Part shown: piece by piece, positions 32,097 to 60,254 of the stretch
Numbering within the stretch: the stretch's first letter is position 1
How the letters are laid out: every line of letters begins with the position of its first letter
Assembly (NCBI RefSeq): GCF_964204645.1
Contig: NC_134033.1
Span: forward strand, 1,694,131-1,758,130
Direction of reading: 5' to 3'
DNA: 64,000 nt
Source: Tubulanus polymorphus
Lineage: Eukaryota; Animalia; Nemertea
Position numbers and translations under genes: made by a program
The notes under the pieces: model-generated
Database searches by the model: none
Seen by the model: the letters and a program-made list of their open reading frames with translations, nothing else
What the model was told of the DNA's origin: nothing

Positions 32097-33529
32097 TTAG
32101 TACCAACCGCCGTAACCGCCCATATTACCAAAGGCATTGTTACCGTAACCACCGGTAGCTCCGAAACCTTTGTTAAATCCATTGCCGAATCCACCGTTGG
32201 CAAATCCGTTACGATGGCCACCAGCGGCGCCATTGGCGAATCCTCCGTGACCGGCAGCTCCGCCGAAACCTCCACGACCATATTGGGCACCTCCGGCAGC
32301 GTGTCCATGTTGGGCGCCATAACCGCGAGCGCCTCCGTGTCCGGCTTTGGCGCTGAGGGCGTTTCTGTTATCCCAGCCCTGGTCGATAGCGCGGTTATGA
32401 CCGCGGTTATTGCTGAAGGTTTGGACGTTGCTGAATCCACCTCCATTGGCGAATCCACCCTTGGCTCCGTGTCCGGCGACACCTCCGCGAGATCCGGCAG
32501 CTCCGTAAGCTCCTCCGCGGTTGAAAGCACCACCAGCGCGGTTTCCGAATCCACCGTAACCTGCATTGTGTCCTTGGTTGCCGTAACCTTGGTTAAAACC
32601 GTTTCCAAATCCACCGACGGCACCACCTCCGTGGTTGTTGGCTCCCCAGTTGTTGAAACCGCCTCCGTGTGGGCGGGCCATGTAGCCACCTCCGTAGCCA
32701 CCTCCCATTCCCATTCCTCCTCCGTAACCACCTCCCATTCCCATGCCACCTCCGTAGCCACCTCCCATTCCTCCTCCGTAACCACCTCCCATTCCCATGC
32801 CACCTCCGTAGCCACCTCCCATTCCCATGCCACCTCCGTAGCCACCTCCCATTCCTCCTCCGTAACCACCTCCCATACCTCCTCCGTAGCCACCTCCCAT
32901 TCCACCTCCGTAGCCACCTCCTATTCCCATTCCCATTCCACCTCCATGACCACCTCCGTAGCCTCCTCCCATTCCACCTCCCATTCCACCTCCGTAGCCA
33001 CCTCCCATTCCTCCTCCGTAGCCACCTCCTATTCCCATTCCCATTCCACCTCCATGACCACCTCCGTAGCCTCCTCCCATTCCACCTCCGTAGCCACCTC
33101 CTATTCCCATTCCCATTCCACCTCCATGACCACCTCCGTAGCCTCCTCCCATTCCACCTCCGTAGCCACCTCCCATTCCTCCTCCGTAGCCACCTCCCAT
33201 TCCTCCTCCGTAGCCACCTCCCATTCCTCCTCCGTAGCCTCCTCCCATTCCTCCTCCGTAGCCACCTCCCATTCCCATTCCCATTCCACCTCCATAACCA
33301 CCTCCGTAGCCACCTCCCATTCCCATTCCTCCTCCTATTCCGCCGCCGTATCCACCTAATCCACCATAACCTGCAGGTGTATAAAGAATTGAAGACGAGT
33401 TAAATATCCTAAAAGATAAATTCGAAACATAAAAAGGAAATATGCAAACAGTATTCAAGAGTTTGACCTCTTACCGCTGCTATGGACGGAGACGATCAAT
33501 AACGATAGAAATACAACAGCAGACTTCAT
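32097..33529 (-). CDS. G1: secreted Gly/Tyr/Met-rich structural protein (442 aa)
   Basis: Exons 33475-33529 (MKSAVVFLSLLIVSVHSSG, signal peptide) and 32097-33370. GGGYGGGM repeats, then the conserved core with Trp at 32373-32375. Confidence 0.9.
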
Positions 33530-33835
33530 TGTGAAGAATCTCTGAAAATCGTAATTTCAAAATTCATTTATATTCGTCCTTAGAATTTTACTCAAAACAT
33601 ACTTGCACAGGAACCGTCAAATGCCAGAAGGGACACAAATGTTGAGTGAATGCGTAACGGACACCACCATTGATGAAACACTTTATTCATATTGGGACGA
33701 ATATATATAATCCTACACTTTAATGATGCGATAAAAGATAGAGTTTGAACTGGTAGTTGGATTCAACGCTCCGGCTATATCGTCTTCCGAAATAATCATA
33801 ATCACCTGGAAATGACGATCATGAGTATTAGCATT

Positions 33836-34030
33836 GTATTCCTAAAGATGACCATTAGGATAAAGTCGAAACGTTGAATGAACTACACTAGGTCAAGGAA
33901 TACAGTATTCCTGAAGATGACTATTAGGATATATTCGAAACGTTGAATAAACTACACTAGCTCAAGGAATACAGTATTCCTGGAGATGACTATTAGTATA
34001 TAGTCGAAACGTTGAATAGACTACACTAGC
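33836..34030 (+). ncRNA. Three tandem 69-bp minimal type-I hammerhead-ribozyme-like units (degenerate)
   Basis: Consensus TATTC-CTGAAGA-T-GACTAT-n6-ATAGTC-GAAA-CG-TT-GAATA: stem I TATTC/GAATA, stem II GACTAT/ATAGTC, palindromic ACGT in place of stem III. Units start at 33836, 33905 and 33974. Confidence 0.7.
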
Positions 34031-36069
34031 TCGATGCTTAGTGTGGAATTCTATATCCCTTTACATGGCGACCGTTCCGGTCTTCCCCAATTCAAGGCTC
34101 CTGCCACAGCTTTGGCGGAATATGAGTCACACAAGAACCTTTGTGGCTATTCCTTCGGCCACCAGATGCGATCTCAGATTGGCCATTAGTTCCACTGACC
34201 ACTGGCGATCTCTGTCGACAGAGCAAATAATGGCGGCTCGATATTCAATCAACGTGTGAAAACCTACCTGAATTGTAGACTCGAACAGGCGAAAAAATGA
34301 AGCCCTGAACTGAAGCTCCGGTTAAATCTGTTCGATTTTATAGCCGCGTTCGGCCATCGTTTTTACAAGCTGGTGTTGACAGACGACAGCAATTAAAATC
34401 ATGCGTACATTGTGTCGCAATTCGAAAAGGCACATTCGAAGTTTATTTATGGTATATTTAGATTTATGGTTTGCAGACGGTGTTGGCCAGGCTTTATAAA
34501 TCGCCTTAGCGACGAACAGACGGTGGTAACAGGTGGGAATATGAATCAAAGCTTGTTGATCGCCTGTTTACGTAACCATCACAAAAAGTGACCGATCCGA
34601 ATTTAGTGCCGGTACCACTACTGTGGCAAGCGAGGATTTCGTGATGAAACCCACACAATCGTGGCAAATCTTATGCTTTGATACTTGGATTGACTCCTCT
34701 AAACAACTTCAAGAAGTCATTTTACCTCCAATATTCCGCTGATGCGGCGACCATCACGATGATCGTTAGAACAACAACATCACTTGTTTAAATTGTTTCT
34801 TTGTGTTATTGAGTTATAGCACGAAGTAAAACAATTTGTTATTCAATGCTGTAACGAAAAGGCAATCTCATTATCTCAATTCCCTAAACCTAACTGAAAA
34901 ATGTAATTTTCTTCTTTTTGGCGACCCAGCCTTGCTTGACTTAAACACTAATACTAAGATCACCACTCTCTCATCCAAATTCATTTGCAAAACTAGCGAC
35001 CGTTTACCACTACCCTGATAGCATGTCCTCATTTTAATTTTCCCAATTTCTTTGTGTTTTTTTTTATTTATTCGTTAGTTTTGTGTCACTCTGTTCATAT
35101 GTTTATTTATGTAGTAATTATATGTTCAACCTGTCCATAATGGGATATTCCCGCGTGACAGGTATCTTTCTTTTGTATCGTATGTCAGTTTGATTTTGAT
35201 GAATTTGATTATAAAAAAAAGGCATCAAATGGTGCGTACATACTGGGCCTGCTTAGATCCCCTCCCTCCCCATACGCATTATCACTGAACCCCCTCCCTC
35301 TATCGTGCCTACACACTCAGTGAACGACCCCTTATCAACAATCCATATACATTATTTACATTACATTAAATGTTGGAGGGATCTCTACACATCTAAGCCT
35401 ATTTTGATGAATGGCTAGCTGGGTATTTCAAAAATCCGAATAAAGTGGTGCCATCTGGTGTGTACCACCGATATATCATTGAATAATGTTCGTACTTCGT
35501 TACAAGGACGTTCAATGAAGATTCTAAATGTATATCATATATTATACTGCGTGACAACATCCGAGTTAGAAAACTTATCTTTGAGTTGATTGAGTCTGAG
35601 TTAAGTGGATAATTCTTCTGCCATCTTTGAACAAATAGTTCTTCAGAAGAACCTTAAGGGATGTTCTTCAGCTTGCCTCTGGGAGGAACCCCTAAAGCTT
35701 CTTCAAAGCACCCCGAAAGGTTTCCCGATGGACCGATCGCTCAGGTAAAGGTTTTTGTGAAATGTATGTTACCCATGAGTCCTTTAGAACACATTTATCA
35801 CGAGGTTCGGAACACGTTCTCCAGCACTATATTCCACGCGTCCTAACCAAGTTCAACATTCAGATCATCGAGAACACAAATGAAGAAATTCGGACAACCG
35901 TCCCAATTTTATGGTGGTACATTCAGATTTCAGGCTGAACTGAAATTCATGCAGACGTGTACATACACGAATTACCTATATCTTAAATCAAGAAATCTAA
36001 ATATATTTATCTATTTTGATGACACAGTTTAAGAGTTTGCAAGGTAAATAACGCCGTAACGTCTCGCAT

Positions 36070-36960
36070 CAGTGCATAGATGTTGGAATTCTAGGCGTAT
36101 TCACCCACTGGAAGAACGTATCCGTTATTTGAAAGGTTAACTGCGATTGTTGGACGATCGGATCGACCCAAGACCTATAACGTTGTTCTGGAGACTTAGT
36201 GCACGTAGTAGGTACAGTAAACATGTAAATACCACCATTGTACATTGTTACCGATGATGAAGAACGAGTTGTCTCCAAGCGATTGAACATTTCAGTCAGA
36301 ACTCAAACCTCTGTAGATGCTAACATTACTGACACTGGAATGAATAAACCGTTCACGAATTTGTACAGGTTTGTTTACAGTTTGTTCCGTCGCATGGGCG
36401 CAACAGATTATCCTTCTTTATATAACACATATTTCACTATTTGGTTTAAGTGATAATTTAGTGATAATGAACCACTCTCGGCAACGGCTAGAATTAAGAA
36501 ATCTCTCCGTACGATGGCGAGATTTATGCGTCAACGTTAGCGCCACTATCAAAACTGTTACCGAGTAAACCGACTTTAACAACGACTAGAAATAAGGTGA
36601 CACCTGATCCTACGATGAAAGCGGCGGATAATGCTTCCGAGGCTCTAACTTGATATCCAGAATTACCCAACCGTAGTGTTGTTGCATTGATGGTGTTGTG
36701 TGATCTATCGTCGTTGATTCAAGTATGTCTTCAGTAGCTCCTGTAGTTCTTCCAGTTGGCACAAGACTGGGAATGGCGGAGCCCTTGGAGTTAGAGATAA
36801 ACTTTGGAAGCTCTTTTAGATATCGATGGATGGACTGTCGTGAAATTAGAAATATAGTAGTTCGTATACTATTTGTAGTTACCGATTGACATTTGGATGG
36901 CGATAATTTGCGAGCTCATTTCGATAGCGATGTTCTGGGAGCCTGTAGTTAGTGATAAGA
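36070..36960 (-). pseudogene. Decayed rhodopsin-GPCR fragment (S/T-rich N-terminus, TM1, TM2, later pieces)
   Basis: Frameshifted reading ...FLVVVKVGLLGNS/LIVALTL...FLILAVAE (GN of TM1, LAxxD-like TM2). DNA similarity to 43480-43900 and 39850-40200. Confidence 0.45.
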
Positions 36961-38073
36961 CTGACACCCGTGCATTGCAGCGACTCAGAGAAATGCAAAA
37001 CATTGAAAGCACGTAACACATTTACCAAAGATCGATTTGTTAAGAACCTTGCATAAATGATGTATGAACATTAGAATTTTTACAAATTTTAACTCGTACA
37101 GCTACATCATTAAAAGGTGCATTGATACGTCAGTCATCAGTTATCAGTCAACGGCCATGAGTTATAAGCTACCAGCATAAAAGAGCAATTGATGGTATTC
37201 CTACTCGAATGTGTTTCATGAGTTCAAACTTGTTTTAGATTATGACAAAATCTGTTCGTCTTGCATGTATCACCGATCATAAGATTGAAACCCATCAATA
37301 ACTCAGATCTCAATGAAGGCTTCTCCTTTAACCAAACTAAAACCCAGTTTGAATTTTTCATATTGCGTTGAGTTGACTAAACTTGACCCAGTGATCTTCA
37401 CTCCAATGCCAACAATGGAATTGTATTACTAGGTATATATACCCCATGAAGGGCGAAAGAGACTTCACTGCATGACATTGTCCAGTGGAACATTGTAGAC
37501 TATAAACTCATTTTAGTTCTATAACCAATGTTTATGGCCTCGAAATCGAATCAAAATTTCCGAGAATGAATAATTTTCGTATGAATTCCACTAAACGAGA
37601 GAAGGTGATGAGAGGGAGAGCCCATGGAGATAAAAGAAACGCCAAATAATGAATAGTGTTTTAAAAGTGCTATGCGGAATTTTATTCAACCGAGTCGTCC
37701 AGAGAGAAAATTCAATTCAATCCATTAATATATATTAATCAATTTTTGAATTATTAGCAACAACGGCAACAATGGTAACTACAGCAACAAACAGAAACAG
37801 TGCACGCTAAGACATAACCACGACATTCAATAAGTTTTCAACTGCAACCTACAAAAATAGACATTAATAGAAACTGAATTGGAGATGCGCTACTGATGAA
37901 TCCTATCGAGTTATGTAAAACGACGTTTCTAATCAGTTTTTGATAAAATTTTCTCAAATCGAGCAAACAAACTGAGAACACTCGAAACAAGTTAATATTT
38001 ACTATTTGTGTGGCGAGATTTTGAGATTTTACCTTTTTTTCTAACGAAGGAATAAAGTCTTTCAAGTAAGAGT

Positions 38074-39286
38074 TTAGTAGTAACCGCCAGCATGACCGCT
38101 GTTGCCATAGGCATCGTTGGCGTATCCACCTCTGGCTCCGTAACCTTTGTTGAAACCATTAGCACCTCCGCCTTTAGCGAAACCCCTATTGTATCCGGCA
38201 GCTCCGCCATTAGCGAATCCAGCGTGACCACTGGCAGCGCCGTGAGCTCCTCTGGCGTATTGGGCGCCTCCAGCAGCGTGGGCATTGTTGGAACCTTGAG
38301 CTCTAACACCTCCGTAACCACGACGAGCTCTAGCGCCAGATTGGTTATTCCAGGCCGCATCGACAGACTTATGATGCCCGGCTTGTTGGTTGAATTTGTC
38401 GAGGTTGTTGTAGCCTTGGTTGGCGGCGAAAGATCCTTGGGCACCTTGTCCGCGGACGTGTCCTTGACTTCCTTGAGCGCCGTATCCTCCACGTTGGTTA
38501 AATCCAGCGTTTCCGCGGTTACCGAATCGGTTGTAGCCAGCAGCATTACCTCTTGCGCCATATCCTCGGTTGAAACCGGCAGCATGACCTCCGTGAGCGC
38601 CACCTCCGCGGCTGTTGGCTCCAAAGTTGTTGTAGCCGGCTCCATGTGCACCTCCTCCGTAGCCACCACCTCCTCCGTAGCCACCACCTCCTCCAGCTCC
38701 ATAGCCACCACCTCCTCCAGCTCCGAAACCACCTCCTCCTCCAGCTCCGTAGCCACCACCTCCTCCGGCTCCGAAACCACCTCCTCCTCCACCTCCGTAA
38801 CCACCGCCTCCTCCACCTCCGTAGCCACCGCCGACTCCGCCTCCGTAGCCACCGCCTCCTCCGACTCCGTAGCCACCGCCTCCTCCGACTCCGTAGCCGC
38901 CGCCTCCTCCGGCTCCGTAGCCGCCGCCTCCTCCGGCTCCGTAGCCGCCGCCTCCTCCGGCTCCGTAGCCGCCGCCTCCTCCGGCTCCGTAGCCGCCGCC
39001 GCCTCCGGCTCCGTAGCCGCCACCTCCTCCGACTCCGTAGCCGCCGCCTCCTCCGGCTCCGTAGCCGCCGCCTCCGCCGGCTCCGTAGCCGCCGCCCCCT
39101 CCGGCTCCGTAGCCTCCACCTCCACCAGCTCCGTAGCCTCCGCCGCCTAAAATGAAATGTATTAGAAACGTAGACGAAAATTATCAACGACACATTCGGA
39201 TCGGAATCAATGAAGAAAGAATACTATTTACCGTAATAGCTAGCGGCCACCGTGGAAATGATACACAGGATCACTGCAAACTTCAT
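38074..39286 (-). CDS. G2: secreted Gly/Tyr/Ala-rich structural protein (375 aa)
   Basis: Exons 39232-39286 (MKFAVILCIISTVAASYYG) and 38074-39146. GGGGYGA/GV repeats, core Trp at 38350-38352. The true frame is absent from the ORF track because exon 2 has no start codon. Confidence 0.9.
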
Positions 39287-39450
39287 ATTGGATGCCTGAA
39301 ATAGAGAGACTGAGACGATGTACGTATATTCAACAACTCAACACTGAAAACTAAACCACAATGTCGGATCTCGATGCAGTCCTTCTTCCAGTAGTCACAT
39401 ACCTTTAAACTGTGACACAAACAATGCACCGATCGTCTCAACCACTGGTC

Positions 39451-39458
39451 TTTATATA
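39451..39458 (-). promoter_or_regulatory. TATA box of G2 (equivalents at 42741-42747 G3, 46459-46466 G4, 53442-53448 G5, 58488-58494 G7 plus strand)
   Basis: TATATAAA/TATAAAA just upstream of a short non-coding first exon ending in a GT donor; position conserved among paralogues. Confidence 0.7.
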
Positions 39459-39849
39459 CTGTCTCCAGCACAGCTATTACGTATGATTTATTTTCGCAAC
39501 TTGCGTTTGGTGACATTTTCTCATTTGCTGGAAAATTTATTTTCACTTTTTACGTCGCAACAGGTGTATACAATGGGGCTGGTATAGACAACAGCTAAAC
39601 AAGGACTTTTAAGGAGATTGAATTATTCGAGGTACAGTCGACTCCACTCAATTCGCACCCAAAATTAGAATCCTATATACAATGCCTTTTTCAAAAAGAG
39701 AACAAAGAAAGACATGATGCGCTATGATGTTAAATCAAGAATTTTTTCCAAAAAGAGGGAGCACGTTCCACGTTGTTCCTCCTAAAATCCACCCCTGATC
39801 GGTTTAAGTGATAACTATGTACATTTATATATATTTACAGTAAACTAAT

Positions 39850-40200
39850 GAACCAATGTCGACACCGGCAAGAATTAGGAAAATAAGTCCGTATGATGGC
39901 CAGATCTAGGTGTCAACATTAGAGCCACAATTAATCTTTTGCCGAGTAAACCGACTTCATCGACTAGCAACATGGTGACACCTGATCCCACGATGAAAGT
40001 ACTTCAGAGGCACCAACCTGACATCCAGAATTACCCAACAAAAATGTTGTATTGATGGCATTGTGTGATTGATCACCATTGATTCAAGTATGTCTCTAGT
40101 AGCTCCTGTAGTTCTTTCAGTTGGCGCAAGATTAGAATCTGCGGTGCTCGTGGAATAAAAGATAAACTTTGGAAGCTCTTTTAGAATTCGATAGACTGAC
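39850..40200 (-). pseudogene. Second copy of the decayed GPCR 5' fragment
   Basis: Collinear with 36460-36830 (e.g. CCGAGTAAACCGACTT, AGTAGCTCCTGTAGTTCTT, GATAAACTTTGGAAGCTCTTTTAGA). Confidence 0.4.
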
Positions 40201-41549
40201 ATTCTGATAGTTCATGGACTTTGTACTGGGAGCACTTATCACATTTTCAAAATGTCGTTACATTAAAAACCTTAAATATAATGATGTATGAAGATTGAAA
40301 TTTCAACAGATCAACTTTTTATTCCCCTTCGGTGGAGATTCGAACCTGGCGACATTGCTAGACTCAGCCACGCATTAAACCGTGCCACACTAGACACAGA
40401 ACGCAGGTACCTGTGCAGGTTTACCACCAGATTGCCCGTTCGCTGAGACAAATTTTACGGAAGAACCATAAATGGAAACACCTGGGCATTTAGCTGCACA
40501 CTTGGTCTACACTAGTGTCGCAGGGTGGCGATACCATCCGGTTAGAATCCCTGCCAGGGGATAAGGGTGCAACTCTTCGAACTGCATCTTTACGGTGCAT
40601 TACAACATCAGCCATCAGCAATTAGTCATAACGTAGCAATAAGCAAACGATATTTCCTGTCGAATGTGTTTCGTGTGCTCCGACTTGGTTTTGGTTATGC
40701 CATTATCAATGCGTCCTAAACGTATAACCAATCGTAAGATTGAAACCCAGCCTTAACTAAGATCTTAAAGAAGGTTAAGTTCTGCTCCTCTAACCAATCT
40801 GAATCCCAGTTTCAATCGTTCATATTGTGTTGAGTTGACTACACTTGACCAACCGCTCTTCACTCCAATGCCAACTCGGAATTACCTAGCATACATCACG
40901 AAGGGCGAAAGAGACTTTACTACGTGCAAGACCAGTTGCACATTTTTAGACTATTCTAAGCTCTTCTTAGTTTTATATCCAATCTAGTACCTTGTAATGC
41001 AAATAAAATTGCCACGAGTGAATAATTAGGACATGTATTCCACGAAGAAGGAGAGAGGAGATACAGATCAAAAAGATTTTTAAAAACGTCAAATAATGTA
41101 AGGTGTTTTAAAAGTGCTATGCGGAATTTTATTCAACCGAGTCGTCCAGAGAGAAAATTCAATTCAATTCATTAACAAATTGATTTTTGAATCAATACCA
41201 ACAACAGCAACAATGGTAACTACAGCAACAAACAGAAACAGTACACGCCAAAACAAAACCACAAAATCACACATTTTCAACTACAACCTAAAAAATAGAA
41301 AAACATAAAAATTTGAATTGAAGCTGCACCTCTGCTTATGAGCATAAGTGATTAATGTGAAACACGTATTCATTTTATCCATTCATAACCAATTTTATCA
41401 AGTTACCCAATCAAGACTAAGGCCACTCGAAATTGAAATATTTCAGTATTTGCTATTTACGTGGCGAAATTTGATGACTTAAAAAAAACGTTTCATTCGG
41501 ATTTTACCTTTTATATCTAACGAAGGAATGAAGTTTTTCAAGTATGAGT

Positions 41550-42567
41550 TTAGTAGTAACCGCCAGCATGACCGCTGTTGCCATAGGCATCGTTGGCGTA
41601 TCCACCTTGGGCTCCGTAACCTTTGTTGAAACCACTAGCACCTCCGCCTTTAGCGAATCCGTTCTTGTATCCGGCAGCTCCGCCATTAGCGAATCCAGCG
41701 TGACCACTGGCAGCGCCGTAACCTCCTTTGGCGAATTGGGCGCCTCCGGCAGCGTGGGCATTGTTGGAACCTTGAGCTTTAACACCTCCGTAACCACGAC
41801 GAGCTCTCAAGCCAGCTCTGTTATTCCAGGCCGTATCGACAGACTTAAGATGTCCGGCTCTTTGGTTGTATGTGTCGAGGTCGTTGTAGCCTCGGTTGGC
41901 GGCGAAAGATCCTTGGGCAGCTTGTCCGCGGACGTACCCTCGACTACCTTTAGCGCCATGTCCTCCAGCTCGGTTGAATCCACCATAACCGCGGTTACCG
42001 AATCGGTTGTAGCCAGCAGCATTACCTCTGGCGCCATATCCTCGGTTGAAACCGGCAGCATGACCTCCATGAGCACCACCTCCGCGGTTGCTGACTCCAA
42101 AGTTGTTGTGACCGCTTCCATATGCACGCGGGGCATAACCATAGCCGCCTCCGTAGCCACCACCTCCTCCGTAGCCACCACCGCCTCCAGCTCCGTAGCC
42201 ACCACCTCCTCCGACTCCGTAACCACCGCCTCCTCCGGCTCCGTAGCCACCACCTCCTCCGACTCCGTAGCCACCGCCTCCTCCGGCTCCGTAGCCACCA
42301 CCTACTCCTACTCCGTAGCCGCCGCCTCCTCCGGCTCCGTAGCCGCCGCCTCCTCCGGCGCCGTAACCTCCTCCAGCTCCGTAGCCTCCGCCGCCTACAA
42401 TGTGATAGATTGGAAATGTAGACGAAAATTATCTTTAAGATATTCGACCGGAGAAAATTCGAAAGCAATGACACATTCAGGTCGGAATAAATGAAGAAAG
42501 GATACTATTTACCGTAATAGCTAGCGGCCACCGTGGAAATGATACACAGGATCACTGCAAACTTCAT
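41550..42567 (-). CDS. G3: secreted Gly/Tyr-rich structural protein (299 aa)
   Basis: Exons 42513-42567 (signal exon identical to G2) and 41550-42394; core Trp at 41826-41828. Confidence 0.9.
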
Positions 42568-43479
42568 ATTGGATGCCTGAAATAGAGAGACTGAGATGAT
42601 GTACGTGTATTCAACAACTAATCACTAAATACACAACCACGATGTCGAATCTCGATACAGTATTTTTTCCAGTTGTGCCGGTGAACATACCTTTAAACTG
42701 CGACACAAAACAATGCACTGACCTGCTCAACCACAGGTCTTTTTATACTCTTTCCAGCAAAGCTATTAATTATGATTGATAATCGCTACTTTGCGTGTGG
42801 TGACATCTTCTCATTTGCTGGAAAATTTATCCACACTTTTACGTCGTAACAGGTGTATACAATGGGACTGGTAGGCAACAGCTAAACAAGAACCTTCAAG
42901 AAGATTTAATACTTCGATATACAGTAAACTCCGCTCAATTCGTACCTAAAATCTCACTTGAGAGTGATACGTGAATTGTGTAATTTCATATCAAATTGTT
43001 TCATTAAGGTATTTCGTCAAACATCTGAGTTACCTACGAGTTGATAAAACATGGCCTGGAGGAGTCTTCTGTATGTTCTTCACGAGGTTCCTCATTTCGA
43101 GCACATCTATTGCGAGACTTGGAACATGTTCTCCACTAGACTCCATCCGTTTTAACCTAGTTCAACGGTCAGAACTTGGAGGCCACATTACAAGCGAAGA
43201 AATTCGGACAACTTTATCAACATTTTAACGCTACATTCTGATTTAAGACTAAACTGGAATTCAAAGGCATTTGCAGCAAACGTGTAGGTTTACTCGAATA
43301 CTCGAATGACCTACATACACGAATGACCTTACAAATCAAATCCCGAGACCTGAATCTTGAAAAAAAATTAATCTATCGTTTAAGCCTTTGTTTGGGAACC
43401 TTTGCAGCAAGGTAAATAACGCCGCAACGTCTCGTGTATTTCCCTACTTGTCAGTGTGAAAATTCGAAGCATAGTTCCA

Positions 43480-44077
43480 TTGGAAAAAAAAACATATCCG
43501 TTATTTGAAAGGTTAACTGTGATTGGTGGTCGATTGGACCCAAGACCTCGCCCAAATGATGTTGTTCGGTAGTAGGTTCATTACACACAAAGATACCACC
43601 ATTATACCTTGCATTATATCCCCGCATGAAAACCCGGTTACTATTTATAGTGAAATTCTAGATATTCCGTATTATTGGAAAACAATTCCGCGAGTCTACG
43701 TTTCCGCGTAATGACAACCCCGATCGTACACACCGACGATGACGAGCGAGTTGTCTCCAAACGTTTAAGTCAGAGCTATAATTGTTATCGATACTTTCAT
43801 TACTGAAATTGGTAGTAATAAGATGTTCACTACTTGTTACATTTTGACCCGTCGCATGGACGCAACCGATGTCGTCTTTATACCACGCATCTTTCACGAC
43901 CACATCGGGTATCACTGCTCCGGCCATAGAAACCAGATAGATTAATTTAGCCAACTCTGAATTTCTGAATTGAGGTCCTTCAAATAGGAACCATACGATG
44001 CACGCTCGTTCCCGGGATGCAAGGCAAAGTAGATTAGAACTCGATGATTGTATGAGGTTTACGTGCTTTCCTTGCAA
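43480..44077 (-). pseudogene. Decayed rhodopsin-GPCR fragment (TM3-TM7 region)
   Basis: The ORF reads NLLCLASRERACIVWFLF, comparable with WSLVLLSVERLVVVGFPL of the intact GPCR. It continues with TM4-like LIYLVSMAGAVIP, an ECL2 Cys, then frameshifted GVVITRKRR...EY/RISL. Confidence 0.6.
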
Positions 44078-45182: not shown

Positions 45183-46294
45183 TTAGTAGTAACCGCCAGC
45201 ATAACCGTTGTTGCCATAGGCATTGTTAGCGAATCCACCTTTGGCTCCGTAACCTTTGTTGAAACCATTAGCACCTCCGCCTTTAGCGAAACCGTTCTTG
45301 TAACCGGCAGCTCCGCCATTAGCGAATCCAGCATGACCGTTGGCAGCGCCGTAACCTCCTTTGGCGAATTGGGCGCCTCCGGCAGCGTGGGCTCTGTTGG
45401 AACCTTGAGCGGCAGCACCTCCGTAACCTTTACGAGCACTCAAGCCAGCTTTGTTATTCCAGGCCTTATCAGTGGTCTTAAGATGTCCGGCTTGGTTGTT
45501 GAATGTGTCGAGATTATTGTGAGCTCGGTTGGCAGCGAAAGATCCTTGGGCACCTTGTCCGCGGACGAATCCTTGACTTCCTTTAGCGCCATGTCCTCCA
45601 GCGCGGTTGAATCCAACGTTTCCGCGGTTACCGAATCGGTTGTGACCAGCAGCATTACCTGTGGCGCCATATCCTCGGTTGAAACCGGCAGCATGACCTC
45701 CATGAGCACCACCTCCGCGGTTGTGGACTCCAAAGTTGTTGTGGCCGGCTCCATGAGCACCTCCTCTGTAGCCACCACCTCCTCCGACTCCGAAACCACC
45801 ACCGCCGCCTCCTCCGGCTCCGAAACCACCACCTCCTCCGGCTCCGAAACCGCCGCCTCCTCCAGCTCCGTAGCCACCGCCTCCTCCTGCTCCGAAACCA
45901 CCGCCTCCTCCAGCTCCGTAGCCACCGCCTCCTCCGACTCCGAAACCGCCGCCTCCTCCAGCTCCGTAGCCGCCGCCTCCTCCGACTCCGAAACCACCGC
46001 CTCCTCCACCTCCGTAGCCACCACCTCCTCCACCTCCGTAACCTCCGCCGCCTCCGACTCCATAGCCACCGCCTCCTCCGACTCCGTAGCCACCGCCTCC
46101 TCCGACTCCGTAGCCACCGCCTCCTCCGACTCCGTAGCCACCGCCTCCTCCGACTCCGCCGCCTTCAATGAAATATATTAGAAATGTAGAAAAAAATTAC
46201 ATTAAAGATATTCGACGGGAGAAAACGGATAATATTTACCGTAATAGCTAGCAGCCACCGTGGAAATGATACACAGGATCACTGCAAACTTCAT
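45183..46294 (-). CDS. G4: secreted Gly/Tyr/Phe-rich structural protein (344 aa)
   Basis: Exons 46240-46294 and 45183-46162 (AAG acceptor). GGGGYGV/GGGGFGA repeats; core Trp at 45459-45461. Confidence 0.88.
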
Positions 46295-47876: not shown

Positions 47877-48039
47877 CTTGGCCAGTGGTTTGATGTCTTA
47901 TATGCTAAATACTACTAGAAATGAACCGAATGAATAATCTATTGCTATCTATAAAATGACGCGGCCGATTTGGAGAAACCATTATTTCAGCCCAAGTTAT
48001 GCACACTTTTTTACGACACGTCTGGAACTTTGGATCCTG

Positions 48040-48177
48040 GGGCCGGTTGCATAGTCATGGCTTAGACTTAAGACCAGTCTAAGACCAACTTAGTTCTATA
48101 GCCAATCTAACATCTTAAGACCAGTCTTAAGATTTAAGACTACTTTTGGACTTAAGTCACGACTGTGCAACTAGCCC
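48040..48177. mobile_element. PIF/Harbinger-type MITE (138 bp)
   Basis: GGGCCGGTTGCATAGTC...GACTGTGCAACTAGCCC flanked by CTG on both sides. Confidence 0.85.
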
Positions 48178-51100: not shown

Positions 51101-51705
51101 GTTTACGAAAGCGACCCGAGCGATGGGGAAAAACAAGGTATCGTTTTTTACTCCTCGTGAAAAAAAGCCAATAACATTGAAGCAAGATACGTTTGATTCT
51201 ATTTAAAAAAAAACTTCATAATTCGTTTATTGTTTTTCGTCATATAGATCTTTTCGACAATATACAAACACAAAATAGAAGCACAAAGTAAAGAGGATCC
51301 CAATTGGACGTGAAGAACTGGTTGAAATCTGTTTGGCATCTCACTTGAAATCTGCAACAAAAACAACGAAGAATCTTTGTAATTAAAAAACTCTTTCTGA
51401 GAAAAATGGCTGCATCCATTAGCCTAGGGATTTAATTCTAAACAGCCTTTGGGAACACACTTTTGACATCATCAAAATGCGTAAGGTGACCTATAGAACC
51501 TTCCACAAAAATGGCTGCCTTCATGAATTCCCCTATGCCATCATTTAAATGCTTTATATGAAAAATTATCTACTCAAATAGACGGAAAAAGATCGATGCC
51601 TTCGTTGGTACAAATCTTCCAACTCAGTTAAAAAGCAACGCTTTTGCTATTGATATTTGTATGAACTATGTTTGGGCGTACCTCTGTTTAATGCCATCTT
51701 TCTGT

Positions 51706-52808
51706 TTATGCGTATCCGTAATTTTTAGCGTTGTTGCCGTAAGCTTTGTTGGCGTAGTTGCCTTTAGCACCGTAACCTTTGTTGTAACCGTTGGCATTAC
51801 CCTGATTGGCGTAACCTTTATTGTATCCGGCAGCTCCGCCATTAGCGAATCCACCGTGACCACTGGCGGCACCGTATGCTCCTTTCTTGAATTGGGCGCC
51901 ACCGGCGGCGTGGGAGTTTTGGGAACCTTGTCCAGCAACTGATCCATAGCCATTCCGAGATTTCAAGCCAGCGCGTTCATCCCAGACCTTATCGACAGCT
52001 CTAAGACTTCCGGCTCGTTGATTGTATTTGTCGAGGTTGTTGTAACCTCCACGTTGGGCAAAGGAACCCTGTGCACCGGAGCTTTTGACAGCTCCATTGC
52101 TGCCGCTGGCGCCGTAACCTCCGGCATTCTTGTATCCGCCATGTCCTTGGTTACCGTACTTTTTGAAACCTTGGTCGTGACCTTGGTTGCCATATCCTTG
52201 GTTGTAGCCGTTACCGTAGGCACCGTAGGCCTGAGCTCCACGGTTGCTGCCTCCGTAGGCGTTGTAAGCGTTTCCATATGGACGTGGCTGGTACATTATT
52301 CTTCCTCCTCCGTAGCCACCACCTCCTCCCCTTCCGTAGCCACCTCCACGTCCCATTCCGTAGCCGCCTCCGTATCCTCCGGCTCCACCGCCTCCGTAAC
52401 CTCCGCCTCCACCGCCTCCGTAACCTCCGCCTCCACCACCTCCGTAACCTGCGGCTCCACCGCCTCCGTAACCTCCGCCTCCACCGCCTCCGTAACCTCC
52501 GGCTCCACCGCCTCCGTAACCTCCGCCTCCACCGCCTCCGTAACCTCCGGCTCCACCGCCTCCGTAACCTCCGGCTCCACCGCCTCCATAACCTCCGGCT
52601 CCACCGCCTCCGTAACCTCCGGCTCCACCGCCTCCGTAACCTCCGCCGCCTACGGGCATGTAGCCTCCTATAAGTTAAAAGTGAATTTAAGAATGAAGAT
52701 AGCGAAATAATGAACAGAAATGTGACAGAGCGAGAGAGAGAGAGTGCATCAATATTTACCAGCATATACAGCAGCAAACAGCCCAATAAAAGTAATAGCA
52801 ATCTTCAT
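51706..52808 (-). CDS. G5: secreted Gly/Tyr/Lys-rich structural protein (336 aa)
   Basis: Exons 52760-52808 (MKIAITFIGLFAAVYAG) and 51706-52667. GGYGGGGA repeats; core Trp at 51982-51984. Confidence 0.9.
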
Positions 52809-54715
52809 TTTGTAGCTCTGGAAGTAAATTCAACCCAATAGTTTAAAATCAAACAATTTCTTTTAAACCATCTGAGACTATAACCGTTCTAAAAAGTGCA
52901 GTGTTAGTAGCCTCAATCGTTGGCGGTATCGCAACACCAGCTATCCCGACAGATTGCGTGATAAACACTCAGCGTAGCGCTGCGCACTCGGTCTAGTGTG
53001 ACAGGGTTTCGTCACGCGTTTAGCAATGTCAACAGGTTCAAATCTGCCGGGAGAGGATGATGTGCGTGGAACTCAATGTTTTGATAACTGGATCCCAAAA
53101 ACTTGAATTCGACCACAAGGGTCTGCAGTTGCACTAAAGCCAGTTGAAGTTAACTGGTATTAAAATGCCAAAGTGACAACTGAAATTGCAATATCACTAC
53201 GGAATTTCGTCACCAGTTAACCTTAAACAATTTTTGACTAAACTAACCCACGGATCAGATTCGAATTGATACAAAGAAGTTGGGTACCAGGTTATCCAGT
53301 ATTTCCAAATGTATAAGTTCACATTAACAAGGCTGAAAACGTCCAAAGACAAGTAGCCAACGATCCTTAGGATTCAATTCTTCTTACCTCTTTATTCAGC
53401 GACAGAAAATGGTTGTATCCAGTCGAGAGAATATGAGCCTCTTTTATACCAGTGTGATCTCACCCACCTGACACTGTGCACACCTGTGCCTGACTCATTC
53501 GATTAAGGCGAAACAATTGAACATGAGTCAAAAGAAAATTCGTCACCTCTTCTTTTGTCTCTGAAGGTATGATAGATTTCACCTGGTGCCCACGTTTGCA
53601 ATGTCATCTGCGATGCGTCCGAAAAGTTGAAAAGGTAACGCGCGCATAACAAAGTTGAAAAGTTGAAAATACGTGAACCTATTCTACTTATTCCAGTTAA
53701 GAATGCGGCTATCATGAAGGCAAAAGCTGAGTTAGACCTAAAAAAGATCATCCATGGAGGTTAGACAATTGAAGAGGTTTCTATAAATTTGGAGTTTATA
53801 TATCTTTAGCAATCTCCATACTTGGACGGTCAAAGGGTCAAAATGATTACTTAAATGATGAAGTCAATAGAATCATCGTTGATTCCGATATATCTAACAT
53901 TGGTGTCGATCAACTTAAGATTGGGCCTACATGAATATCTTAAAATAGATTTTTCCAACTTTGTTCATTTTTCCGAGATTAAAATTCCTAATCTTTTTTC
54001 TTGTACGACAAAAATTTGGAGCCACCTAAATACCGTTGAACGGATTTGGGCCTTCTTTATATACCCCACTCCCTTAATGAATCAAATCAAAGCCACCTAC
54101 AGTTTTACCGATTACGTCATAAGAAAATACATATATTTGATTCTTGTCGTCATAGGTTTTGCATGACTATATACGGAATTCTACGAAGGCGTTTCTGAAA
54201 TGCGCTCGGGAAGGAGCTTCGTACGCGCAGGTTTCCTTAACGTTGATGGATGGTTGTTTAGCACGACCACGTTTGTCGATCCAGAACCGCGGTTAAAACC
54301 GGTACATTCATCACCGAGTCAAACGTGTGTTCGTGACGCCCGACAAGATGGGCCTGGTAGTAGTAACGCAAAAAGACAATAGAATTGCGGAGGACGTCAC
54401 CAAAATTGGGGAATTACATTCATAAAAACGGATTCTCAGTGTCATCATTTACTTCTTCAAGTTCGATGATTTTTGAGCAGATTATTTACTCTGAAGTAGT
54501 ACGTGATTGGCCCAATTCAGCGGTTGCTTTATTCTGGCTTTCGTGTATGTTTCATAGTGGATGCAGTGACGTTGCAAGGGGTTCTGCCAAACTTAACAGT
54601 TAAATACAAGGAGGAGACATATATTTAGAGAATCCCACACTGATATAATGAAAGTCGGAAATATTTTCATCCAGCTATAAATTTATTCATCCGACGTGAC
54701 GACTAATCCTAATGC

Positions 54716-54912
54716 TAATAGTCATCTTCAGGAATACCGAGTAAAACAAAATACGAGGTATATATACAACATCGAGGCTTCTATACCCCGTATTTTGTTT
54801 CACCCAGTATTCCTGAAAATGACTGTAAGGATATAGTCGAAACGTTGAATAAACTACACTAGCTCAAGGAATACAGTATTCCTGAAGATGACTATTAGAA
54901 TATAGTTGAAAC
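54716..54912. ncRNA. Hammerhead-like repeat: one inverted partial copy plus two direct copies
   Basis: TAATAGTCATCTTCAGGAATAC (inverted) at ~54716-54737; direct units at 54807 and 54876 with the same 69-bp spacing. Confidence 0.65.
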
Positions 54913-55980
54913 TTTTTGGACATCATCTTTCGTTATATCAGTTTGGGATTCTCTATATCGCCAAAACACGGCAAAGTGTTTCATCGGTTATCAAGGAGAC
55001 GTGTTTAGATGGCCCTATTCGTCGTGTGAACCATATTTGGCACACATAGATGAAGAAAAACGGTTCGCTACGATTTTGATGATATCACTAAAAAGAAAAC
55101 ACAATACGTGTTCTGTTGTTAAGACAATGATATAGAATCCCATACTAAATAAAAAAGAGTCCAAAATGTGTCATTGAGTTAATGCTTTAATCCAATGTTT
55201 CGATCATCAGGATCATCGATGCCTTGCTACTAACGTCGGCGATATCTATTCTTACAAATCAACCCGTGTAAACAACTTATACAACAAACTAGGACCAATT
55301 AAAATAATGACGAAGAACTCGTTCTTTTTTACTCTAAATGATGTTCTGTCTGTCTGGGCGGGAATGGTGGCTGCCACAAGGTGTGCGTAGGGCATATGGT
55401 AACATGTGTTGTTATTGTTCGCTTTGCATTTTCGAGTAAATCGCAATTCTATCAACATTGTGAAGGTAAATCATAGTAACTAAATCAAATTCGTGATCGC
55501 GCTCTGACAAGTCGACATTGAAAACCTATTCTTCAATTAAACGTCAATTTCTGGAGCTAGAATCTCATCTAGAATACTGTTCCTTGTTGTTTTATTGTGG
55601 TAAGATCTGGAATAATTTCTGGAATAATTTTTTGCGCGTAACTAAATTCGGGACTATCCTGGTGATATTACCTTTCGTGGATTATGAACTTATTTTTCTG
55701 AGAGGTAACTAAGGGAGGTTGGGATTGTCCTCTCCGAATTCCGGAATTCTAATCCAAGCTGGACGTTCGTTTCTACCAGAATACGAATCGATATAGTTCA
55801 TAAACGGAATACGTTCAGTCGAAACCTGCCTAGATTTAAATCTGTAGAATTTGTTTCAAATCTTAACTTAAAACTCGAAATAGATCTACAAGAAAGAAAA
55901 TCATGCCTCGCCCTATTGTTGTGGTATCTAAACCTGCCTTAGAATCCTGATTTCGAAGATTGTTTCCTTTAAGGCTGAAC

Positions 55981-57475
55981 ATGAAGCAGAAAATGAGGTG
56001 TATTATTCTGGTTCTGATAATAACATTCAGCAACATCGTCTATCGCCCTATCAATGCATCGTACTACAACGTAGGTAGGTATCTTATCCTATAGAATAGA
56101 TCCACGTTCTTCAATTTCATTTTTACCCTTTTCTCCCGTTTATACCGTCTTATTCGGTAACATCCTGATAGAAAAGTAATCCATTGTATTCCATTCTATA
56201 ATATGCTTGCTTTGAAATTTCATCCACATCTTAAAATCTCTAATTTCATTCTAATTACTTTATTTATCGTCCATTACCTCCTAGCCCTACTCCATAATTT
56301 GCCATTATATACATGCTTTGTAATAAAAATTTCACCAAACTTCATCCATAGATATCGTTATTTTTTTTCATTGCCTCCTGCTATTTAACCTACTAAACAT
56401 AAGTTTGGATATCCTAGTGAAAAAAGTAACGCAAATTCTAGTTTAAATGCAAGATCGACAGTTCCGTTTTCATGCAAAAGTTTGAGCTCAAAACGGTTGA
56501 GGTTGAATGATTGCCTTTTTTGAAAACATATGCAGTAAAGACTTAGTAATTATACCAAAATTTTAATTTTTTTGTGAAATTGGACCTCGATAATGAAATT
56601 TGATTAATACAATGAATAATTTCTGCAAATTGACTCCGTCTCCGATATCAGCATTAGGTGGTAAATTCAAAATATTCAGAAATACAATATTCTATAATTT
56701 TCTCTCTTCTCTAGCATCTTTGCCAACCGCTTCCTACGGCACTGGTTCCACTAACAGCGGGCTGGGGAAACAAGCCACTAGCGGGTCCTACAGTAACGGG
56801 AACGCCGCTGGAGAATCTACCGGCGGAAGCCAAGCACAATCCGCCACCATCGGCAATCAGGGAACTACGAGCTATAACCAAGGCGGTTCGACCGGAGCGT
56901 CGACGACATTCGGGGGTACCCAAGGGCATTCCTCGGGGGCAGGGAACGGCCAGAAGACCGGTTACGGAACATTGACCGCGTCCGGATCGAGTGGAGGCTA
57001 CGCTAAATCAGCGAATACCGGCTGGGGCAGCCAGGGCGATATATTCACCAAAGGGGGCTACACGGTCCAGAAAGCGTACGCCGGTAAAACGGGTCACGGC
57101 GCTGGGGGTGGAACGAATACCGTATCGACCGCTGGCTCGGCTTCCGGGGTCGGGGCAACGAATAACTACGCCGGAGGCGGTGTAACGCAAACTGTGAAAA
57201 ATGGCGGCTACACTGGTGGACAAAACGTCAACTACGGCACGCAAACCAACGCTGCTAACGGACATACCAACAACAACTTTGGATCGTCGCCCGGCTACAC
57301 AACGGGATACCGGTATCCGGTAAACTATGGAAACCAAGGGAACTACGGTAATAACTACGGCGGATATGGAAACAACTATGGAAACAACTATGGAAACAAC
57401 TATCCCATTTATGGTAATAACTACGGAAACAACTATGGAAATTATGGCCGAGGTAATTACGGAGGTTACTACTAG
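55981..57475 (+). CDS. G6: secreted Gly/Thr/Asn/Tyr-rich protein, second subfamily (284 aa)
   Basis: Exons 55981-56074 (MKQKMRCIILVLIITFSNIVYRPINASYYNV, donor GTAGGT) and 56715-57475, phase 1. Core Trp at 57023-57025; C-terminal GNNY repeats. Confidence 0.8.
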
Positions 57476-58995
57476 TAAAGGATGGTAATGAACATCCCGA
57501 ATCCATGTCATCCATAGTCTAAATAAAACTGTCGAGAAAGAAAAATAGAAATTAATGTTATCCAAATGTGTCTTTATTGTTTTGTTGTCTTGCTTTATTG
57601 CTTCATGTTGAGAGGGAGGAGAAGGTCGCCGCCCTTGGCAGATCAAGTAAAATCGAGAGACCAGGATCCAGAAGGAAATGAAACACATTTCTCGGAAAAG
57701 CGGCCATGTCAAGGGCAACTAGCGGGGCGTTACCCTCGGTATTGAAATGTTTCTGAAGAATTACACAACTACGATAGGATGTCATCATGAGTGTCAAATT
57801 TGCAGGTCCTAACTAGCTGACAAAATAGGCAACCTTAGTAAGCAGGAGTCCTGACCTCGAAACCAACCCCTAATCCACGCCGAGATATTTTTGGCTTCCG
57901 CTCATAACATGAATCCAAATGACTGTACTGGGAGACGTAGTGATGCCGTTTACAAATACCCCACAAATCAGAAACAATACATGGCATACTATCTATCTAT
58001 CTGCTTTGTAAAACGTGAAAACGAATATTCTCCAAAATATGCCGATAAATTACGATAATCAGTCGTTTGAAAATTCGATGACGTCATACGGGGGATTCAC
58101 GGAGCCGAATATCCTTCCTAACACGAGCTACGCATCTTAACGTTCTTTGAGAAAAAAATATCCGTTTACTCAATTGCTCGTTTATCTAGACACGTGACCC
58201 GTATGCGTGTGCGTACTACTGTGGTAAAAATGAACCAATCAGGATCGATTAGGTTTTGAATCAGCGGTCACGTGGGCGATCCGTATGGATGACTAAAAGG
58301 TGGGTGCGATAAATCCGAATCGAGTGACGCGTTGGACATCAATATCTGACAATTCAAACAAAGACGATGAAACAAGCTGTTTCGTAGCGGGGCGATAAGT
58401 CACCGACGCTGTCCCAGCTTAAAGGAACATCCACTGCCGGTGGTATCCGCCGCGCAAAACTGCCTATGATTCACCGTTTTCATTGTCTATATAATAACCG
58501 TTCGCTTTACCTCTGCCGTTCACTAAAGCGCTGCATCCGAAGCAAGGTTCGTAACATTATCTCGAGTCCCGATTTTCGTGACTCTTTGTACAGTGATCTT
58601 TCGTTTACGTCCGAATGTTTTAATCATTTAAAGTAAAATGAGAAATGAAATATCGTTACCATTACTGAAACCTTTGGTAAAACTGAGCAGGATTCGACAG
58701 TCATTATTAACTTCATGTAACTTCACTGGAATCGTTGAAGTTACTGGTAATGAGAAGATCGTCGTTAGTAGCTTACCAAAATCTTACCGAAGCGTTAAAG
58801 TCATTTGAAATAAGAATTGCGTTGTTACTGCTCGAATATCTAATGTTTAATTGCGCCTCGATCATTCTATCCATTATTAAATTAGGCCAATCATTCTATG
58901 GAATGGTTGAACCTATTAGCTATAGCCGGTATATCGAATTACGACGATTATCAATGTAAATTTTATTTCAAGGTTCAGCACTGGACAACATCACG

Positions 58996-60254
58996 ATGAA
59001 ATTGGCAATCTTGGTCATCAGTTTGGTATCGACGGCTAGCGCCGGCTACTATGGTGGTATGGGCGGTATGGGCGGCTATGGTATGTACCAAAAAGGGACA
59101 ATAGTTTTGGTAATATGGATGAGTTGGGGATTAATTAGTAATGACATACTGGGACACTTTTGTCTACCTTATGGAACATTTTTCTGGGGACATTTTTGCA
59201 AGATTGCAAGGATGGCAAGAGAAGTGTTGGTGGTAGGGAGGCTGTTGTAAGGGATGTAAATAGTAATCGCTCGCGTCCATCATACTCATCCATTTTTTTT
59301 CAAATTAAATCCCGAAATATTTTGCTTCTAATTCAAGGCACTGGTGGATACAGTGGCGCCGGGTACGGAGGAGCCGGTTACGGAATGGGCGGTTATGGAG
59401 GAGGTGGATACGGAGGAGGAGGATACGGAGGAGCCGGATATGGAGGAGCAGGAGCTGGATACGGAGGAGCAGGAGCTGGATACGGAGGAGGAGGATACGG
59501 AGGAGGAGGATACGGAGGAGGTGGATACGGAGGAGGTGGATACGGAGGAGGTGGATACGGAGGTAAATAGTTTTTTCACCAACGGCCTAAGGTCGATTCG
59601 GTGAATTCTGCGATGACGATTCAAATGTTTCAGATATAAATTTACTCATTTTCAGGCTATGGAAGAGGTGGGTATTATCCTGGTGGTGGAGCTTATGGCG
59701 GCACTTACGGAGGTCAAGGAACTCGTGGCGTCTACCAAAATAATCAAGCTGGAGCGCAAAATAGCGCTGCCGCACAAAACCAATATGGCGGCGTTGGAAA
59801 CAAGAACCAAAACACCTACAATCAAGGTGGTGCAACCGGTGCCAAAACTAACTACGGAGGAGTTCAATCGCACGGTGCTATGGCTGGCAACAAAAATAAA
59901 CAAGGTTACGGCGCTATGAATGGTCAGGGATCAAGCGGAGGATACCACAAGACTACTGATACCGGTTGGGGAAGTCAAGGATCCATCGGAACCAAAGGAG
60001 GATACGTCGACCAAAATGCTTATGCCGGCAACAACGCTTACGGTGCTGGAGGCGGTGGTCAATCTCACGGATCTCACGGTCACGCAGTCGGAGGTGGAAC
60101 TCAAAATAACTACGCCATGGGAGGAACCTCACAAACTCAAAACCAAGGAGGTTATACCGGAGGTCAAACTGCAGGAACCGGTGCACAAGGCAGCAGTAGC
60201 AGTGCTAATGGTGGTACTAATTGGGGAGCTATCGGTGCCGGCTTTGGTCGTTAA
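58996..60254 (+). CDS. G7: secreted Gly/Tyr/Gln/Asn-rich protein, second subfamily (302 aa)
   Basis: Exons 58996-59080 (MKLAILVISLVSTASAGYYGG...), 59338-59562 (GGGGY repeats) and 59656-60254, all phase 1; core Trp at 59967-59969. Confidence 0.9.

Follow-up and report, generated by a model that had tools for sequence, protein, structure and literature searches.

We analyzed a 64-kb stretch of the genome of the nemertean Tubulanus polymorphus (C9:1694131-1758130, "the window"), which contains a cluster of seven genes, G1-G7, for putative secreted proteins that are rich in glycine (Gly). A previous reading of this DNA, made from the sequence alone, had proposed that each protein has a signal peptide, a variable low-complexity arm, and a core of constant length centered on one tryptophan (Trp). 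The observation is sound and turned out to be stronger than first claimed. When we searched the six-frame translation of the window for the central motif, G..[KR]..[DN]..W........[KR].G[YH], we found exactly 7 matches. All 7 lie in long open frames, in the Gly-rich reading frame, so each of the seven genes does carry the motif in frame.

The cores are of two types. A-type cores (G1-G5) are rich in Arg, Lys, Asn, and Ala, while B-type cores (G6 and G7) are rich in Gln, Ser, and Thr. The features of the seven genes, in window coordinates, with lengths in nucleotides (nt) or amino acids (aa), are:

G1 open frame, 32097-33470, minus strand: Gly-rich frame with the motif.
G1 signal-peptide exon, 33475..33529, minus strand: ATG at 33529, hydrophobic N-terminus, ends in phase 1 before GTAAGA; followed by a 104-nt GT-AG intron.
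G1 main exon, 32097..33370, minus strand: Gly/Tyr/Met arm of ~232 aa at 32676-33370; A-type core at 32100-32675; Trp codon at 32373-32375; stop at 32097-32099.
G2 open frame, 38074-39180, minus strand: Gly-rich frame with the motif.
G2 signal-peptide exon, 39232..39286, minus strand: hydrophobic leader; joined frame intact.
G2 main exon, 38074..39146, minus strand: arm of 24-nt (8-aa) repeats, ~165 aa; A-type core at 38077-38652; Trp codon at 38350-38352.
G3 open frame, 41550-42428, minus strand: Gly-rich frame with the motif.
G3 signal-peptide exon, 42513..42567, minus strand: hydrophobic leader; joined frame intact.
G3 main exon, 41550..42394, minus strand: repeat arm of ~89 aa; A-type core at 41553-42128; Trp codon at 41826-41828.
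G4 open frame, 45183-46196, minus strand: Gly-rich frame with the motif.
G4 signal-peptide exon, 46240..46294, minus strand: hydrophobic leader; joined frame intact.
G4 main exon, 45183..46162, minus strand: repeat arm of ~134 aa; A-type core at 45186-45761; Trp codon at 45459-45461.
G5 open frame, 51706-52674, minus strand: Gly-rich frame with the motif.
G5 signal-peptide exon, 52760..52808, minus strand: hydrophobic leader; joined frame intact.
G5 main exon, 51706..52667, minus strand: repeat arm of ~128 aa; A-type core at 51709-52284; Trp codon at 51982-51984.
G6 open frame, 56597-57475, plus strand: Gly-rich frame with the motif.
G6 candidate signal-peptide exon (tentative), 55981..56074, plus strand: strong hydrophobic N-terminus, ASYY motif as in G2-G4, phase-1 GT donor, 640-nt intron.
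G6 main exon, 56715..57475, plus strand: divergent B-type core at 56723-57277; Trp codon at 57023-57025; then a long Asn/Tyr/Gly repeat tail.
G7 open frame, 59640-60254, plus strand: Gly-rich frame with the motif.
G7 signal-peptide exon, 58996..59080, plus strand: hydrophobic leader whose N-terminus parallels that of an environmental transcript (L033, described below).
G7 exon 2, 59338..59562, plus strand: Gly/Tyr repeat arm alone on a phase-1/phase-1 exon.
G7 exon 3, 59656..60254, plus strand: B-type core at 59667-60221; Trp codon at 59967-59969; C-terminus ends in GR.

All seven gene models are intact coding sequences of 284-442 codons, and every intron is GT-AG. (A script checked the joined frames for length, stops, and splice dinucleotides only; homology searches and folding were done exon by exon.) The typical gene begins with a short 5' exon that starts with ATG, encodes a hydrophobic leader, and has a phase-1 donor of the GGTAA type. 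Phase-1 GT-AG introns lie at the corresponding place in A and B genes. As for the claim that every gene has a signal peptide, G1-G5 and G7 do have a leader exon followed by a phase-1 GT-AG intron, but the leader of G6 is not adjacent to its main exon. The candidate 640 nt upstream is tentative and is the weakest point of the gene models. (A nearer in-frame ATG, at ~56612, would give G6 a weak signal peptide instead.)

Among G2, G3, and G4, the signal exon is near-identical while the intron behind it differs by indels of 33-41 nt. A conserved exon beside a drifting intron is the expected mark of real exons. These three genes also have in common a TATA box, a non-coding first exon, and a 5' untranslated region (UTR) intron of ~105 nt. 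Their TATA element, GTATA(T/A)AAAGACC, lies ~160 nt before each ATG, and the 5' UTR intron ends 9 nt before the ATG. G1, G5, and G7 likewise have a pyrimidine-rich AG acceptor immediately before the ATG. Acceptors just before the ATG could equally mean spliced-leader trans-splicing.

We checked the other sequence features that had been claimed for these proteins. In G1-G5, 276 nt (91 codons plus the stop) do follow the Trp codon, as stated. (In G7 the distance is 285 nt, or 94 residues, and in G6 it is 450 nt, or 149 residues.) The landmarks that G2 was said to share with G7 (GN[RK], [FY]NQ, QGY, NNA[HY]xAGG, and GAxG) all align without gaps. The lack of Cys and scarcity of acidic residues also held: the main exons encode no Cys and 1-5 Asp plus Glu. 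Their isoelectric points (pI) are 9.3-10.1, with 26-55% Gly and 6-12% Tyr. The cores are ~30-32% Gly and 11-17% aromatic, with 9% Arg plus Lys in type A and almost no acidic residues. The conserved columns of the core are Gly, aromatic, and Asn/Gln positions (mostly Gly, with scattered aromatics). The arm of G1 is rich in Gly, Met, and Tyr, with periods of 24, 48, and 72 nt.

The central Trp did less well. It is nearly but not absolutely invariant over the family, since one paralog described below (L006) has His at that position, still followed by 91 residues. Some of the proteins have more than one Trp: there are 3 in G1 and 2 in exon 3 of G7.

To count the family, we searched the 268-Mb, 77-contig assembly with G2, G7, and a joint profile. 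This gave exactly 15 members, all on contig C9. G1-G7 are not a closed cluster of seven: four more B-type genes follow G7 just past the end of the window, and the other four members are at separate sites on this chromosome. At the main locus, the five A-type genes are on the minus strand and the six B-type genes are on the plus strand, so that the two arrays diverge from the gap between G5 and G6, which is the sole head-to-head junction. Another A-type and B-type pair (L006 and L012) lies 1.1 Mb upstream of the main locus. The remaining two genes (L007 and L008) are isolated A-type genes whose core is interrupted by an intron at core position ~57; in both, the two exons fit the core profile residue for residue. 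L007 (734-1015 with 1459-1905, plus strand of its locus) is at 15.66 Mb of C9, and L008 (2437-2787 with 1492-1917, minus strand of its locus) is at 13.85 Mb. Neither seems to have a long repeat arm, and the position of the intron is identical in the two. L008 has an in-frame TGA just 5' of its second exon's profile match.

We then asked whether A and B cores are related along their length. Profiles of the two types aligned (with hhalign) at a probability of 93.8% and E = 1.7e-7, with 159 ungapped columns and identical numbering. Because both profiles are Gly-rich, we ran composition-matched controls that compared one half of a core to another half. In 4 of the 5 pairings, the probability was just 1.6-1.9%. 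The fifth control, the N-terminal versus the C-terminal half of A, reached 66%, though the match covered just a repeated motif of 17 residues. This motif (GG-x-A-x-GFN-x-GYGA-x-G) is found near both ends of the A core, at positions 19-35 and 159-175 (hhalign E = 5.6e-5), and is the sole internal repeat that we detected in the A core (for example, at 38077-38652 of the window, minus strand). We also scanned offsets across all A-by-B pairs. The peak was at offset 0 (z = 5.8). When 12 local windows were scanned over ±8, offset 0 won in 9 and came close to a tie in the remainder. In the family's tree, the split between A and B is supported at 100/100, and the branches on its two sides are 1.52 and 1.05 changes per column long. 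Judging from these alignments, A and B are evidently homologous in one register, and they split anciently.

The core was said to have the same length in every gene. An unforced alignment of the 15 cores with MAFFT has no internal gap in columns 1-185, so this is correct for ~185 residues (approximately positions -100 to +84, counting from the Trp). Only the final 5-10 residues and the tails change in length. The summed length of the tree is ~7.9 changes per column, which is ~1,400-1,500 substitutions over the 185 columns. Ordinary proteins gain about one indel for every few tens of substitutions; at that rate the core's tree should have tens of indels, and it has none.

G2, G3, and G4 serve as an internal control: with a synonymous divergence (dS) of only 0.12-0.17 between their cores, they have arms of ~165, ~89, and ~134 aa. 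In other words, the length of the repeat arm differs by up to 76 residues between near-identical copies. The arms change length freely by slippage; the core has no tandem repeats. The contrast between arm and core is sharper than had been claimed: there is no core indel in 15 paralogs and one environmental homolog, across an A/B split of ~2.6 changes per column. The core is under purifying selection, with ratios of nonsynonymous to synonymous divergence (dN/dS) of 0.26-0.49 for old pairs, whose dS ranges from 0.5 to above 1.5 (saturation).

The environmental homolog is on contig Ga0123379_1066977 (L033, 1022 nt), which we found by scanning metagenome records from JGI with a DNA pattern. It contains one unbroken, intron-less frame of 288 codons. 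The encoded protein begins with a signal-like leader, followed by an arm of Gly/Tyr/Pro and then a B-type core, and it ends in YGR, as G7 does. There is an AATAAA 3' of the frame, and together with the intron-less frame, this makes L033 look like a transcript. L033 is 62% identical to G7 and groups inside the B clade. It is not among the 15 copies that the profile search found in this genome. Frequent core indels in homologs had been named in advance as one result that would refute the sequence-only reading. L033 provides the only cross-sample test, and its core has the same length and aligns in whole without a gap. Its architecture also offers indirect support, from sequence, for the order of signal, arm, and core and for transcription of the family. 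L033 was found only by the DNA-pattern scan, and HMMER's composition filters, or the exclusion of the species itself from the libraries, may hide other relatives.

Six of the eight B-type proteins (G7, at 60249-60251; L011-L014; and L033) end with Gly-Arg, mostly Tyr-Gly-Arg. A terminal Gly-Arg is a possible carboxypeptidase/amidation signal. The C-termini of A-type proteins are mostly aromatic and often paired (GGYY or GGWY), while G5, L007, and L008 end with Ala or Gly.

The sequence-only reading did not recognize a named family, and our searches agree. Against Pfam-A, five cores had no matches to any family with E up to 10 (including Chorion_1, Attacin, and Gloverin), and neither L033 nor a core-less gene near L006 (described below) had a Pfam match. 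Among PDB sequences there was no solved relative, and just one chance match (E = 0.38). Neither the A core nor the B alignment had relatives in word-index searches, and an exhaustive profile search with the A alignment over 1.84 billion representatives was also blank. In the ESM Atlas, the best score for the A core was 0.82, which is below the useful range, and the B core had no usable match. Six core peptides that we searched for literally in the literature did not occur there, and neither did the contig name. Exact-sequence look-ups with a G5 open frame and with L033 were blank as well. On this basis the family appears to be new at the level of sequence; in kind, secreted Gly-rich structural proteins are already known.

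We also considered whether the host could have the known arthropod or nematode families. A six-frame domain search of the genome found neither the arthropod R&R chitin-binding cuticle domain (PF00379) nor the nematode cuticle-collagen N domain. As a positive control, the same search found 58 matches to zf-C4 (PF00105), the zinc finger of nuclear receptors, many of which are split-exon halves of one gene; their presence excludes a ctenophore. COX1 is absent from the assembly. So the named Gly-rich families of arthropods and nematodes are unlikely on host grounds too, and the absence of PF00379 rules out a lepidopteran or other arthropod host.

How does the family compare to known Gly-rich systems? 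Silk-like structural proteins (SLSPs) have been defined by two criteria: a signal peptide, and a Gly content that reaches 25% or more within a window of 80 residues (PMC4944945; McDougall et al. 2016). The proteins described here have a hydrophobic N-terminal exon (by hydropathy, and tentatively for G6) and at least 25% Gly, so they fit this loose class. Like the shematrins and KRMPs of pearl oysters, which are SLSPs, they form a lineage-specific multigene family with Gly-X repeat arms and basic charge. However, SLSPs are a polyphyletic class that is defined by composition, not one homologous family. Shematrins are dominated by repeats and have a short basic C-terminal tail, whereas the G1-G7 family has a long conserved non-repetitive core and ends with GGYY, GGWY, or YGR. 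Libraries that take in NCBI and UniRef proteins gave no match to shematrins with E ≤ 0.001 (the presence of shematrins in those libraries was unconfirmed).

Abductin, the elastomer of the scallop hinge ligament, is ~136 aa long. It has a GGFGGMGGGX repeat and 58 mol% Gly, with 116 residues given for its extracellular form (PMC9999432). The arms of G1, L006, L013, and L014, and also the core-less gene, are similar in that they are Gly/Met/Tyr repeats with di- or tri-Gly around a single Met. Abductin differs in having an N-terminus that is rich in Ala and contains 2 Cys, and no large conserved C-terminal core (PMC9999432). G1 has no Cys and carries the 185-aa core, so it is not an abductin. The resemblance is limited to the arm and its composition, with no detectable homology.

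Proteins of the mussel foot, thread matrix, and periostracum are Gly/Tyr/Asn-rich, basic, and bear 3,4-dihydroxyphenylalanine (DOPA), and they are short or repeat-based. Like our proteins, they favor Gly, Tyr, Asn, and Arg/Lys and have a high pI, and like type A they lack acidic residues. They differ in having no long fixed-length domain, and we found no sequence similarity to them in the libraries that we searched.

The closest parallel is the central domain of lepidopteran chorion (egg-coat) proteins. This domain is Gly-rich, 51 aa long, and free of indels among over 500 sequences; it forms amyloid and has been solved as an amyloid scaffold (PMC13252134). Chorion proteins are also encoded by clustered genes for secreted proteins, fall into two homologous subfamilies, and combine a fixed-length Gly-rich domain with variable flanks that have Gly/Tyr repeats (PMC13252134). 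Our family likewise has a fixed-length indel-free domain, variable arms, and two subfamilies, but the likeness is of design only. There is no sequence similarity (no match to Chorion_1 in Pfam, E up to 10). The core is 185 aa instead of 51, and it has many aromatic, Asn/Gln, and basic residues, types that are disfavored in the chorion domain. The variable arm is on one side only. Chorion genes are paired throughout, whereas here there is one head-to-head junction (G5/G6). Finally, assembly of chorion has been demonstrated, while assembly of the 185-residue core is predicted by analogy.

What might these proteins do? From the likeness to the design of chorion, we read the 185-residue core, by analogy, as an assembly module. 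We consider it roughly an even call that G1-G7 are lineage-restricted, secreted, Cys-free, basic, Gly/Tyr/Asn(Gln)-rich structural proteins whose core assembles in register. The proteins would be exported and would build an extracellular material: a matrix, sheet, fiber, egg coat, or glue. The core would be a self-assembly module whose in-register stacking would match up conserved Gly, aromatic, and Asn/Gln positions from one subunit to the next, whether the subunits are alike or not; an insertion in the core would then be lethal to assembly. The arms would be disordered elastomer-like spacers, and the many Tyr could be cross-linking or sticker sites. In-register stacking would explain the fixed length in unlike paralogs, the conserved Gly/aromatic/Asn/Gln columns, and the alignability of A with B.

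The proposal of a register-dependent assembly domain, which was part of the sequence-only reading, has the zero-indel pattern and the precedent of chorion (PMC13252134) on its side, while the products suggested in that reading (fiber, tube, cuticle, egg case, or adhesive) are guesses. Several results weigh against the proposal. Structure prediction lent it no support: with the 15-sequence alignment, AlphaFold2 gave confidence scores (pLDDT) of 36.3 for the A core and 36.9 for the B core, with no confident fold and no secondary structure for either type, both of which are predicted to be fully disordered. (Prediction of a complex of A core with B core scored 0.00, which counts neither for nor against binding.) We saw no convincing or significant periodicity in the core residues, of the kind that is common in solenoid or serpentine repeats, and no internal duplication other than the 17-residue motif (hhalign of the halves, ~1.6%). 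A dN/dS of 0.3-0.5 is only moderate constraint, and for the recent trio of G2, G3, and G4 it is 0.63-0.85. The signal peptides were judged by hydrophobicity (a hydropathy scan) and position only. Lastly, in the three public runs that contain the locus, introns and intergenic DNA are covered evenly and there are no joints, so these runs behave as DNA and are silent on transcripts.

The main rival is that these are secreted disordered proteins that form a coacervate or adhesive, in the manner of mussel foot proteins or the low-complexity region of FUS, with no ordered assembly. The length of the core would then be set by selection on how many aromatic and cationic stickers there are and how they are spaced, along with the absence of slippage-prone repeats. 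We think that this is unlikely. The predicted disorder of both cores is what it would lead one to expect, and so is their composition (30% Gly, 11-17% aromatic, 9% Arg plus Lys in type A, and almost no acidic residues); the conserved columns are mostly Gly and scattered aromatics without periodicity, and slippage is not favored in a core without tandem repeats. But disordered sticker-and-spacer sequences normally tolerate indels, and there are none here over ~7.9 changes per column, in 15 paralogs and one foreign homolog. It also leaves aside the residue-by-residue register that A and B hold along the whole core.

A more specific version of in-register assembly is that the core is a new functional-amyloid-type fold in which basic A-type and polar B-type subunits co-polymerize in register. 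The family would then have converged, outside the arthropods, on the design of the insect chorion scaffold, and the pairing of A with B at two loci would reflect an obligate two-component material. This seems quite unlikely to us.

Another alternative, which we consider very unlikely, is that the proteins are not building material but Gly-rich cationic immune effectors of the attacin, gloverin, acanthoscurrin, or nematode Gly/Tyr peptide kind. They are secreted, cationic, Cys-free, and rich in Gly, Tyr, and His, as such effectors are, and are encoded in tandem arrays whose recent duplicates are under relaxed or diversifying selection (dN/dS of 0.63-0.85 for G2/G3/G4); the Gly-Arg ends of most B-type proteins and of L033 could be amidation signals. 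On the other hand, at 284-442 aa, with arms that reach ~230 residues, the proteins are large, the dibasic pairs of the A-type cores are not conserved between paralogs, and an indel-free core of 185 residues is unlike fast-evolving effector families. The five cores matched zero Pfam families at E up to 10, Attacin and Gloverin included. And since the genome lacks the R&R and nematode cuticle-collagen domains, the named models come from other phyla.

That the frames are non-functional (low-complexity DNA or decaying pseudogenes, kept open by Gly-rich composition) is close to refuted: other frames of the same repeats are also open for hundreds of codons, downstream poly(A) signals are inconsistent, and none of the runs that hold the window behaves as RNA, but the core's dN/dS is well below 1 at saturating dS, all 7 gene models stay intact when joined and their canonical splice sites are conserved in position and phase, signal exons are conserved while introns diverge, and an intron-less, transcript-like homolog of like architecture is present in environmental data.

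Lineage-specific Gly-rich secreted proteins are common, but most are dominated by repeats and evolve rapidly. What differs here is that 185 low-complexity residues, predicted to be disordered, have kept one exact length over ~8 substitutions per site, both in the two subfamilies and in another organism. The central domain of lepidopteran chorion is the only well-studied parallel. If the core does assemble in register, then this would be an independent second case of a large paralog family that encodes one supramolecular architecture, and the core would be a compact Cys-free module for recombinant biomaterials, with natural variants in arm length. If A and B also co-polymerize, it would be an unusually long low-complexity domain whose length is fixed by the geometry of assembly. 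If the core does not assemble, the question remains of what holds a disordered sequence free of indels.

The core-less gene mentioned above (L032:1896-2450, minus strand, which corresponds to C9:571896-572450) and the A-type member of the upstream pair are ~4 kb apart. The core-less gene has a single exon, which encodes a secreted protein of pure Gly/Met/Ala/Tyr repeats. Its signal peptide resembles those of G2-G4 and its C-terminus is GGYY. It may be a core-less derivative of the family or an unrelated abductin-like gene.

The window contains a few other features. About 300 nt upstream of the start codon of G1 is a 69-nt tandem repeat (33836-34032; 2.9 copies, 92% alike). Rfam found no hammerhead in it at the gathering score or with E up to 1; CUGAAGA and GAAAC boxes are visible by eye. 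At 199-1038 (minus strand), an open frame encodes a mucin-like sequence rich in Ser, Thr, and Pro; it has a transmembrane-like segment at its C-terminus and matches nothing in Pfam. Within the B-type array, between G7 and the following B gene, is an intron-less gene of 361 codons for a rhodopsin-family G protein-coupled receptor (61417-62502, plus strand; Pfam 7tm_1, E = 5e-8). Finally, the region at 12000-30000 (minus strand) contains a RanBP2/Nup358-type nucleoporin gene, with, for example, an open frame at 14633-18910 and a tetratricopeptide repeat (TPR) exon at 29143-29493. It encodes two RanBP1 domains, RanBP2-type zinc fingers, and Phe-Gly (FG)-rich stretches, with the TPR exon at the N-terminus. 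Its best outside relatives are 35-54% identical and are scattered over vertebrates, echinoderms, arthropods, and molluscs.

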